A DNA stretch of 63,987 nucleotides, filler included, from Bigelowiella natans CCMP2755 (taxonomy: Eukaryota; Protista; Cercozoa): the NCBI GenBank assembly GCA_000320545.1. It is 8 parts of 8 records of this genome, joined end to end, with 100 filler letters (N's around TTAATTAATTAA, not from the genome) between each part and the next. Parts side by side here need not be neighbours in the genome. Positions count along the whole stretch, not along the records: positions 1 to 19,378 come from ADNK01002930.1; 7 more parts are not named here. The stretch is one strand, 5' to 3'. A program made the translations under genes and the position numbers. The notes beneath the pieces are model-generated. The model made no database searches and had not been told where the DNA came from. It saw only the letters and a list, made by a program, of their open reading frames with translations. This document shows, piece after piece, positions 12,820 to 15,899 of the stretch (positions are counted from its first letter, which is position 1; each line of letters opens with the position of its first letter).

Positions 12820-13110
12820 GCACTGCATTTTGCACGCTGCAAGTGTCTTGCAACACTTTGGAAATGTAGTTCTTCATCATTGTTTCATTGTTTCAACGCG
12901 CTGCTCAACGGCTGTCTCCCATGTGGTTCTGGCGCATGCAGTTTTGATCAACGCTTTCTTCGTTGTTCATTGTTCAACCACAATCCACGCTCTCTCAAAC
13001 GGCAACGTCTCACTGCGTTTCGCACTCTGCAAGTGTCTTGCAACATTTTGGAAACGCAGTTGTTCATCATTGTTCATTGTTCATTGTTCAATCCACGCTT
13101 TCAAACGGTC
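12820..13110 (+). repeat. Imperfect direct repeats upstream of the copia pol fragment
   Basis: cactgc..tt.gcac.ctgcaagtgtcttgcaaca.tttggaaa.g.agtt.ttcatcattgtt occurs at ~12821-12890 and ~13011-13080, plus short TTGTTCA repeats. Confidence 0.75.
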
Positions 13111-13236
13111 CAGGCTCATGAGGCGATTTGCAAGATGGGAGATGTCCACCGGCCCTCGCATGCACAACAGTTCAGGTCCAATCACCGAAGGTTTGCACTC
13201 AAGGTCAAAGCCAAGGTGAAGTTTGATGGATGGTCC

Positions 13237-14841
13237 ATCCCGAAATCATGTGCTGATTCCTTGCGCGTGCCCGACGCCAAAGAATGGGCCCTGGCCAGAG
13301 AAAAAGAACACAAAAACTTCAGTGACGTGTGCAAGTCTGTCTGGGAGGAATGCATGCGACCGGATGGTCGCCGCGTGAGAATTTTGCCCACAGCGGAAGT
13401 GCATGATCTGAAATTGGACAAGGACGGCCGCCCACACAAGCGGAAGCACCGGACATGCGGAAAGGGATTCAAACAATCTGAAGGGATCGATCATCACGAC
13501 ACTCATGCACCGGCAATCGACCCCGAAATCTTCCGCTTGTGCCCAGTCATGGCTCTGGAATTGGACTCATCGATGGAGCAATTTGACTTCACCGCGGCGT
13601 TTCTTGCCGCTGACTCTGATGTGGAAACATGCGCAGAGTTGCCTCCAGGGCACAACCCTGAAATGAAAGGAGATGTCATTCCACGTCTGAAAAAGTGCAT
13701 CCATGGGATGAAGCAGTCCGCAGCCAGATTCCACAAACGTGTGAGCAAAGACTCAGAAGAGCTCGGTTTCAAAAGATCTGAATCTGGCCGTTGTTTGCAC
13801 ATCAAACACCATGGATCTGATGTGTGCCTTCTGACTCTGCACGTGGATGACGGTGCGCATTTCACCAGAGACCGCAGAGTGATCCAGAAAGATCTCACGC
13901 TGCTGCGTCGCAAGCATCGGTTGGAATCAGAGCCTCTCAACCAGCATGTTGGTTTGCGAATTGATCGGACCAAAGACACAATTTCTGTGTCATGTGATTC
14001 TTGCATTGATGCTTGCGCCAAACGTTTCGGAGTGGAAGAGTGTGCCAAGGTTCACACTCCGATCGAGAAGATTCCGACGAAGGAAGATGGGTCGTCTTCT
14101 TGTGTTGCGGAACACACGGAGCTCATTGGATGTCTCATTCATGTGAGCAATGCATGTCGACCGGATGCATCTTGCTCTGTGAGCATGCTTGCATCCTGCA
14201 TGACGAATCCGAGTCAGGAGAGTCTGCTCATTGGTCGATGTCTGCTGGGACACTTGTTTCATTCACGCGAGCGAGCTCTGACCTTCCGACGACAAGGAGT
14301 CACAGGCAATTCAGATGGAGATGAGATCAACAATCTGCTTCTGGAAGGATTCCATGATTCTGATTTTGCTGGAGACTTGGAAAAGCGTCACTCACGTTCT
14401 GGATGTCCAATTTGCTCTGGATCAAGCCTCACATGGTGGACCAGCAAACTGCAGTCCTTGATGGCACAGTCTGTGTTTGAAGCAGAAACGACAGCTGCCA
14501 ATGGGTGTCACAAGGCCTTGCTGTTTGTCAGAAAGATTCTGTTCGACATCACTGGACATCCTCTGAGGAAGGGCATTCCACTTCATGGAGACAATGAGAA
14601 AAGCGTCGAATGTGCTCAAACTGGCAATCATGGAAAGAGGAGCAAACACTTCGACGTGAGACTCCATCGTCTCCACCAGGGTCACAATGATGGTGTCATT
14701 GCCACCCACCATGTTGAGACTGACCAAAATCCAGCAGATTTGCTCACCAAAGTCGTCAAGAAGAATGTCTTCATGTCTCTGGTGGACAAACTGGTGTCTG
14801 TGTCAGTCTCCAAGGTTCTTTCCTTGTTTGTGCATGTGTGA
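13237..14841 (+). pseudogene. Copia pol (RT-RNase H) open frame, probably inactivated by missense changes
   Basis: No Tyr in the 653-codon ORF. YVDD reads HVDD (13840-13851). Many conserved hydrophobic residues appear changed (L->P/S, I->T, V->A). Confidence 0.85.
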
Positions 14842-15294
14842 TTTTCACACATGCACTCCCAGCTTCTGCAATGGATCACACTTGTTTGTCAGAGATGCTG
14901 AGTGCAGGCAACATTGTTGCAAAGATCTGCCTTGGCAATGACAAATTTGCAACAAGGGTCATGACTTTGACAAAGTTGCATTCTGATCTCTGGTGTGGTC
15001 AAGTGTGAGTGAAACAGGGTTTTTCACCATCATGGTTTTCCTTGGATTCATCGGCCTGGCTGCAGTTGCAGTGGAGATTCTTGTTGTCATTGTTCGAGCG
15101 ATCTTGATCCCGGATCTGTGATCGGGGGGATGCGCTCAATTGTTGGTGTTCAGTGTGCCAGAACACAGTGCACATGCATGCTCTCAGAGTGTTCCTGAGA
15201 ACATTCATGGGAACAATCCAAGAAAATGCTTGGATTGTGCTGAGAATGCGCGCTGAGTGTTGCAATCGTGTTCCTGATTTTGAGCAATTGGTCA

Positions 15295-15392
15295 CTTCTC
15301 AAGTTGACCAATCTGCACACATCAGGTGATGCATGTCCACGTTCAATCACAATGACATGACTTCTCAAGTTGACCAATCTGCACACATCAGG
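15295..15392 (+). repeat. ~32-bp direct repeat inside the putative LTR
   Basis: CTTCTCAAGTTGACCAATCTGCACACATCAGG at 15295-15326 and 15361-15392. Confidence 0.85.
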
Positions 15393-15899
15393 CTTGCGTG
15401 AGCTCAATCGAGCATTGGCGCAGCAGAAGAGCACAAGGCAACAGCAGAAGCTCATTGCGATTTGCAATTTCGCGCATGCAACTGATGTTGTCCTAGCCTG
15501 GACAAGTGAAGATTTGATTGAGCTGCAAGTGTGCATGTGACCTTAGAGACAGTACATCGAGATCGGCGTCGCCTCGTTATTGGCATTGCTCATGTGCCAT
15601 CCATCTTCCATCGCTTCGAAGTTTTATAAAATGGCATTTGCATTGCACCGCTACCAAAAGTCACAACCTCCTCACCACATCTCCCTGGCTGGAGCGATCA
15701 TGCCTTTGCACGTGCAGCTCTTGCGTGCGTGCCCGCCCGCACTTGCAACGCGTCACTGCTTCGAGCAGCCTCTACGCTATGTTGCCTGCATGCAAAAGTG
15801 ATTGTGTAGGAGGGAATGCGACGGGTTGTTAGCATCGAGCAGGATAGAGCAATGTATCATATATTTTATTCATGGATTGCTTGTGTTGTTTGCAACCAT

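Follow-up and report, generated by a model that had tools for sequence, protein, structure and literature searches.

A literature search returned one source on TpA-directed hypermutation, Mettrop et al. (bioRxiv 10.64898/2026.01.13.699255, April 2026), who studied mutation-accumulation (MA) lines of Bigelowiella natans in which TpA is turned into TpG or CpA. Among 302 nuclear mutations 231 fell within two integrated viral regions, and 230 of these 231, every one of them at TpA, were A>G or T>C; inside the viral regions the rate was about 6e-7 per site per generation versus 3.5e-10 elsewhere, and mutations were Sanger-verified. The same preprint reports 324 TpA-depleted coding sequences (CDS), among which reverse transcriptase and DDE endonuclease are over-represented, as well as 124 TpA-depleted, CpA+TpG-enriched clusters, and puts forward an ADAT2-like deaminase as candidate enzyme. 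The two viral insertions still hold 3.3% TpA, in the hypermutable and single-copy region derived from a nucleocytoplasmic large DNA virus (NCLDV), and 9.2% TpA (bioRxiv 10.64898/2026.01.13.699255). In this study, we analysed a stretch of 63,987 nucleotides of B. natans CCMP2755 (assembly GCA_000320545.1; eight parts of eight records joined by filler; hereafter the window), in which positions 12869-15493, within the part taken from ADNK01002930.1, contain no TpA at all and include a piece of a Ty1/copia retrotransposon whose open reading frame (ORF) has no Tyr. Our reading is that this tract is very probably a silent single-copy relic lying in a domain under a DNA-level, TpA-specific transition process. 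The analysis establishes the dinucleotide specificity of that process, its two outcomes, its restriction to domains and the sparing of young multi-copy copia elements, and it argues for action in place. With the published process the locus shares the TpA target, both outcomes and strand symmetry, together with a TpA depletion and CpA+TpG excess clustered over several kb and an association with reverse transcriptase. The process itself is therefore almost certainly already known, the locus being an end-state example of it, and the suggestion of an earlier note on this DNA that a new genome-defence system was at hand was anticipated by the preprint, its reverse transcriptase-rich CDS included (bioRxiv 10.64898/2026.01.13.699255).

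Dinucleotide counting and translation bear out the two observations from which the earlier note had started, namely the absence of TA over 12869-15493 and the lack of Tyr in a 653-aa ORF, and all peptide strings that it quoted are present at their places. From base composition 169 TA would be expected in the tract, and 0 are observed; the gap between the neighbouring TAs (12867/8 and 15494/5) measures 2627 nt, the runner-up gap in the window 375 nt, and the whole window holds 835 TA dinucleotides. Relative to expectation (rho), TpA, CpA+TpG and CpG stand at 0.00, 1.65 and 0.68 in the tract and at 0.81, 1.06 and 0.87 in the remainder of the window, while successive 1-kb windows (13001, 14001 and 15001) give TpA and CpA+TpG values of 0.00/1.53, 0.00/1.68 and 0.28/1.63. 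The tract's CA and TG are balanced (268:273), and its G+C is raised by several points through TpA removal. Applying the cluster thresholds of the preprint (bioRxiv 10.64898/2026.01.13.699255) picked out the tract on two of the four window-grid offsets tried, a call that is grid-dependent. As a link to the published regions, the genome has exactly one NCLDV capsid gene, and its locus stands at 3.4% TpA, where the NCLDV region of the preprint has 3.3%. The remark of the earlier note that CpG is still common is only roughly right, the observed/expected (o/e) ratio of CpG ranging from 0.26 to 0.87 within the tract. CpG is likewise lowered inside the TA-free tracts (o/e 0.26 at 14501-15000, 0.47-1.09 in the 10-kb locus L065 treated below), and cytosine methylation may mark the same domains, its decay adding to the TpG/CpA excess.

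The assembly was checked in other data. Contigs of two sequencing runs from independent DNA (X1, 2021, and X3, 2025) have 0 differences over 13065-15323 (2259 nt), the depth of the tract in these runs (68 and 55.7, respectively) is the same as that of the unique flank, and at least 12 studies contain 93-94% of the tract's words. The DNA runs containing it are one of 2021 and about 15 of 2025 in separate studies, a pattern that fits the T0 sample plus 15 MA lines sequenced by JGI for the preprint. An artefact of assembly, sequencing or base-modification read-out, for which we found no point in favour, thus retains next to no probability in view of the identical contigs of 2021 and 2025, the recurrence across studies and the Sanger verification in the preprint.

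The ORF (12880-14841) encodes 653 aa with 0 Tyr and ends in a TGA stop. Its match to the Pfam profile PF07727, labelled RVT_2 (E = 5e-27), covers profile positions 3-244 of 244, i.e., the full length. The copia part of the ORF is single copy, its best protein relative in the same genome being 32% identical, and a raw-read RNA run has almost no reads over it; no family consensus is possible because the genome holds no close copy. A complete Ty1/copia element with gag, protease, integrase and long terminal repeats (LTRs) is not present at the locus: no LTR pair was found around the ORF, where the repeat search gave only microsatellites and short repeats, and no integrase was found upstream of the pol part in the tract because the frame enters a short repeat at about 13110. 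TGA is the sole stop type in the tract. Conversion at TpA would destroy TAG and half of TAA (TAA giving TGA or CAA, and TAG giving TGG or CAG) and would be unable to make in-frame stops, thus the long 653-aa ORF is a ghost and no evidence of function.

A search of 5.8 billion proteins returned three close metagenome relatives (P0001-P0003) with 44-50% identity and 13-16 Tyr each. At the 16 columns with Tyr in all aligned relatives, the window reads His at 12, Cys at 3 and Ser at 1, and its His and Cys codons there are always CAY or TGY. The earlier note had also derived the HVDD motif from YVDD, a derivation that fails because P0001-P0003, the nearest Tyr-containing relatives, read HVDD too; HVDD is thus native to this copia lineage. 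The closest of these relatives, P0001 (NCBI, a 1233-nt contig), is assigned by its label to a Myxococcota metagenome-assembled genome, yet it is a Ty1/copia reverse transcriptase fragment, and the contig is probably misbinned eukaryotic sequence. At least three further Tyr-less, TA-free copia pol frames exist in the B. natans genome (L032, L033 and L039, 0 Tyr each), and normal copia families have 44-50 Tyr. Conserved Tyr columns in the four relics, that of the window included, show differing His/Cys combinations, e.g., HCCC, CHHH, CHHC and HHCC, and the conversions were therefore independent. The G+C of the relics (0.49-0.56, versus 0.42-0.46 in intact copia families) shows the shift expected from TA becoming CA or TG.

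The specificity of the process is resolved by a non-autonomous dispersed repeat of 385 bp, a family of at least 40 copies, for which the window copy (10453-10836) and 39 others (L066-L104), 87-94% alike, were aligned and column majorities were used only for counting changes. TA is common at five sites, and all five are three-state (TA, CA and TG). At TpA, A>G and T>C account for 27.6% and 35.7% of copy-by-site cells, respectively, i.e., 63% are converted, versus 0.2-2.0% in the 14 other transition contexts. Converted sites comprise 71 CA and 55 TG. The five sites give 32 haplotypes among the 40 copies, three of which keep all five TA intact. With about 5 TpA versus about 25 expected, the founder of the family was already TA-poor, and the conversions took place copy by copy. 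The repeat seems to have been amplified after an earlier purge, and non-coding elements can therefore survive the process.

Action in place is indicated by contigs of a further run (X17), which carries the same species label, is dated 2015, may represent another strain and is 94-99% identical to the window on the ORF and right border. Between 13156 and 15600 at least 17 dinucleotide sites differ, and 13 of the 17 listed belong to the TA/CA/TG triad: double changes, CA against TG, account for three (13435, 13942 and 15416), eight have TA in X17 and TG or CA in the window, and two have TA in the window and CA or TG in X17. The remaining listed differences comprise two of CpG type and two others. 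Within 15499-15598, 9 of 10 differences are TA versus CA/TG, and seven conversions attributable to the window lineage sit no more than 100 nt from the right border. Together with the three-state repeat sites and the published MA data, these differences uphold the view of the earlier note that the change took place at the DNA level and in place, and its claim of TpA transitions with both outcomes about equal agrees with the Tyr columns, the three-state sites and the CA:TG balance. Within the ORF (13297-14020), X17 further departs from the window by small indels: it lacks 2 nt at 13327 and 4 nt at 13335, and has an extra 6 nt at 13830 and 4 nt at 13869; the relic thus appears to be decaying by indels as well in the strain of X17.

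Several points weigh against our reading. The deaminase search recommended by the earlier note did return six CDA-fold (cytidine deaminase-fold) loci (C980, C570, C3623, C3286, C1679 and C3588) and the sole A_deamin (ADAR/ADAT1-type) gene of the genome (C2414:14438-15741), but this complement looks ordinary, without obvious expansion. The His:Cys ratio at the Tyr columns (12:3) is away from 1:1. For X17, strain and molecule type (RNA or DNA) are not on record, and single TA-versus-CA/TG differences are unpolarised without an outgroup; CA-versus-TG alternation by itself could also derive from ancestral CpG. Finally, the haplotypes of the 385-bp repeat could also have come about through an editing event in each round of retrotransposition, without any action in place. 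This last point belongs to a rival explanation, which we regard as very improbable, that adenines of the retrotransposon RNA or cDNA underwent ADAR- or APOBEC-like hyper-editing while reverse transcription was under way, the edited copy being inserted afterwards. Editing before integration is in keeping with a retroelement as target, with the independent haplotype of each repeat copy and with the preference of ADAR- and TadA-type enzymes for a 5' U. On the other hand, the two strands are hit equally (268 CA and 273 TG), whereas RNA editing would be one-directional; the tract takes in a repeat other than copia as well as 650 nt of further DNA and fades gradually at its right border; orthologous copies, putatively of two strains, differ by TA/CA/TG changes; and L065 is a domain of 10 kb. 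The MA lines moreover show the same signature arising de novo in integrated DNA viruses (bioRxiv 10.64898/2026.01.13.699255).

The other loci that we examined are one 10-kb piece, the 39 repeat copies and a number of individual loci. The 10-kb piece, L065, has only 3 TA and the depletion continues past both its ends; many short-repeat loci carry TA-free runs of 0.3-2.1 kb. A 25-nt tandem array at L065:8472-8696 has units that alternate between GGCATT and GGTGTT and between CATCATC and CATTGTC, i.e., CA versus TG at fixed positions; this array was set aside as proof of ancestral TA, because ancestral CpG yields the same pattern. Three copia families (A, B and C, with 13, 8 and 4 copies and pol up to 100% identical) keep TA at an o/e of 0.8-1.2, and the differences between their copies are not enriched at TpA. 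A single-copy ORF has been purged and young multi-copy copia spared, therefore repetition is neither necessary nor sufficient, and the claim of the earlier note that a RIP-like process is aimed at repeats has to be given up. Repeat-induced, homology-triggered mutation, a mirror image of fungal repeat-induced point mutation (RIP), accordingly is very unlikely: it would suit the richness of TA-depleted tracts in repeats (the unit at 12788-13110, the 385-bp family and loci L002-L030), but it accounts neither for a copia ORF that is single copy, nor for copia families of 4-13 copies that are untouched, nor for the single-copy NCLDV region in which the preprint found hypermutation (bioRxiv 10.64898/2026.01.13.699255).

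In family B (L053-L060; contigs C142, C392, C394, C460, C574, C1575 and C2038), pol is 100% identical in the 8 copies, 7 of which have in common a TA-free segment of about 580 nt 3' of pol, ended by the locus limit; the eighth has a different, TA-containing sequence at that position. An apparently young copia lineage thus carries a TA-free module. This module and the TA-poor founder of the 385-bp repeat are what could be said for native composition or selection, i.e., for a lineage of elements that evolved free of TA, for instance in escaping a TA-cutting nuclease or TA-targeting transposons, or that uses an unusual decoding. We hold such an origin of the tract to be extremely unlikely, given that all Tyr are gone, including positions conserved in relatives, that His/Cys choices vary between relics, that the non-coding flanks are as TA-free as the ORF, and that the relic, of which there is no second copy, is untranscribed in the raw-read RNA run, in addition to the documented de novo events (bioRxiv 10.64898/2026.01.13.699255).

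The tract is composed of three unrelated kinds of sequence, a short repeat, the copia pol part and non-coding DNA (Table 1). The short repeat supplies the first ~80 codons of the 653-aa ORF and is a frequent component of TA-depleted loci. Its summed contig depth is 59408 versus 68 for unique sequence, up to about 870 times unique depth, from which copy number can be gauged only roughly. It is transcribed from some copies, with RNA-seq reads in one orientation, and some of its transcripts (window 12788-13155) have a poly(A) loose end at 12896. Across copies, site 12867/13057 reads CA in 31, TG in 12-13 and TA in 8-11. On the left, the border is resolved only to between 12789/12867 and 13057, since TpA sites are nearly absent from all copies of the short repeat there. 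Downstream of the ORF, the non-coding stretch is otherwise unique in the genome, its 33-nt motif excepted. Past the right border TA o/e rises further, to 0.91 in the fourth 200-nt step, and RNA-seq cover starts in the depth bin 15364-15547, which straddles this border.

Table 1. Features of the TA-free locus and its surroundings; coordinates are those of the window.
Feature	Coordinates	Strand	Remarks
TA-free tract	12869..15493	.	0 TpA in 2625 nt; CpA+TpG at 1.65 times the expected level; the same in independent DNA runs
Very high-copy TA-poor short-repeat units	12788..13110	+	pair 12800-12884 / 12990-13074, 80% alike; forms the left end of the tract
5'-truncated Ty1/copia pol relic, reverse transcriptase and RNase H part	13135..14841	+	RVT_2 at about 13339-14070; Tyr-less, single copy
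TA-free non-coding stretch 3' of the ORF	14842..15493	.	perfect 33-nt direct repeat 15294-15326 / 15360-15392
Right border, gradient	15494..15900	.	TA o/e 0.32, 0.47 and 0.78 per successive 200-nt step
Second TA-free stretch	10387..10760	.	375 nt; overlaps the 385-bp dispersed repeat copy 10453-10836

As to mechanism, the target 5'-TpA-3' is self-complementary, and one activity altering A (or T) on either strand would give TpG or CpA about equally; in our reading, it has worked in place over many generations, removed every TpA and turned all Tyr codons into His or Cys codons. Using the numbers of the preprint (211 events, 6169 TpA and 3132 generations), we compute that each TpA is converted at a rate of about 1.1e-5 per generation, at which removal of about 170 TpA takes roughly 5e5 generations. 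Back-creation of TpA from the 541 CA+TG sites of the tract, at 3.4e-10 per site, is computed at about 2e-7 per generation. Given this fast loss and slow back-creation, a targeted domain should therefore hold ~0.02 TpA at steady state, and zero TA is what equilibrium predicts. The chemistry might be deamination of adenine to hypoxanthine by an enzyme of the CDA fold (ADAT2/3- or TadA-like), which we think about as likely to be right as wrong; thymine oxidation, to 5-hydroxymethyluracil (5hmU) or 5-formyluracil (5fU), or another TpA-directed lesion would give the same pattern and takes up the remaining probability. The Tet_JBP profile (PF12851) had no match in the genome, but control genomes were equally silent, so this result has no bearing on thymine oxidation. 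We infer that targeting is by silent chromatin or small RNAs, and not by sequence repetition. In a more tentative and somewhat doubtful extension, the eraser would be a natural adenine deaminase acting on chromosomal DNA and sent to silent domains, where it would work continuously and maintain a TpA-free steady state, with retrotransposon relics and satellites throughout the genome, and not viral inserts alone, as substrate and with transcribed or very young copia elements escaping. The deaminase idea is that of the preprint, to which the present locus contributes a steady state at domain level, a border gradient and the sparing of active copia.

If this extension is true, it would represent an unprecedented class of eukaryotic genome-defence enzyme, nature's equivalent of the adenine base editors made in the laboratory, and an enzyme of this kind, if it is indeed a DNA adenine deaminase, would be of interest to genome-defence and base-editing research alike. 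A mutator that purges one dinucleotide from chosen chromosomal domains at ~1000 times background is in any case a rare kind of genome defence, and it pushes sequence towards GC. The locus displays the end-state of such purging, no TpA and no Tyr, and the borders with residual TpAs are places where ongoing events could be measured. Since long ORFs in TA-free tracts are ghosts, they may account for part of the unannotated TpA-depleted 'genes' of the preprint. The earlier note arrived at this fossil trace without the help of the 2026 preprint, working from the sequence alone.

Compared with other known systems, the process shares with fungal RIP the DNA-level, dinucleotide-biased and strand-symmetric transitions that wreck mobile DNA in place, but the direction is opposite: RIP turns CpA into TpA and creates TpA, whereas here TpA is absent and CpA enriched. 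RIP also needs duplication, a premeiotic stage and RID/DIM-2 cytosine methyltransferase homologues, whereas here single-copy DNA is struck, identical repeats are spared and the process runs in asexual MA lines; repetition not being the trigger, the analogy is confined to outcome. Fossil clusters of deaminase-type transitions in LTR retroelements are also known from vertebrate APOBEC3 G-to-A and ADAR A-to-G retroelement copies (PMC4866542), which however arise on cDNA or RNA before integration, are strand-asymmetric and stop at element borders, while the pattern here is symmetric, reaches beyond the element and goes on in place. Decay of CpG by deamination of 5-methylcytosine likewise erodes a self-complementary dinucleotide to TpG/CpA, continuously and in silenced domains, but the dinucleotide eroded here is TpA, the changes are AT to GC and CpG is only mildly lowered (rho 0.68). 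The 5' T/U preference of TadA, ADAT2-ADAT3 and the TadA-derived adenine base editors would give A to G at TpA; to our knowledge, no natural enzyme of the TadA/ADAT family purges TpA from chromosomal domains. The closest system remains that of Mettrop et al. (bioRxiv 10.64898/2026.01.13.699255), in which the process is demonstrated on two viral insertions and, for sequence derived from transposable elements, only statistically, while the copia locus described here is the fully converted end-state (0 TpA and 0 Tyr). New in this study are the sparing of young multi-copy copia, the border gradient with TA/CA/TG polymorphism between strains, and short repeats amplified after a purge.

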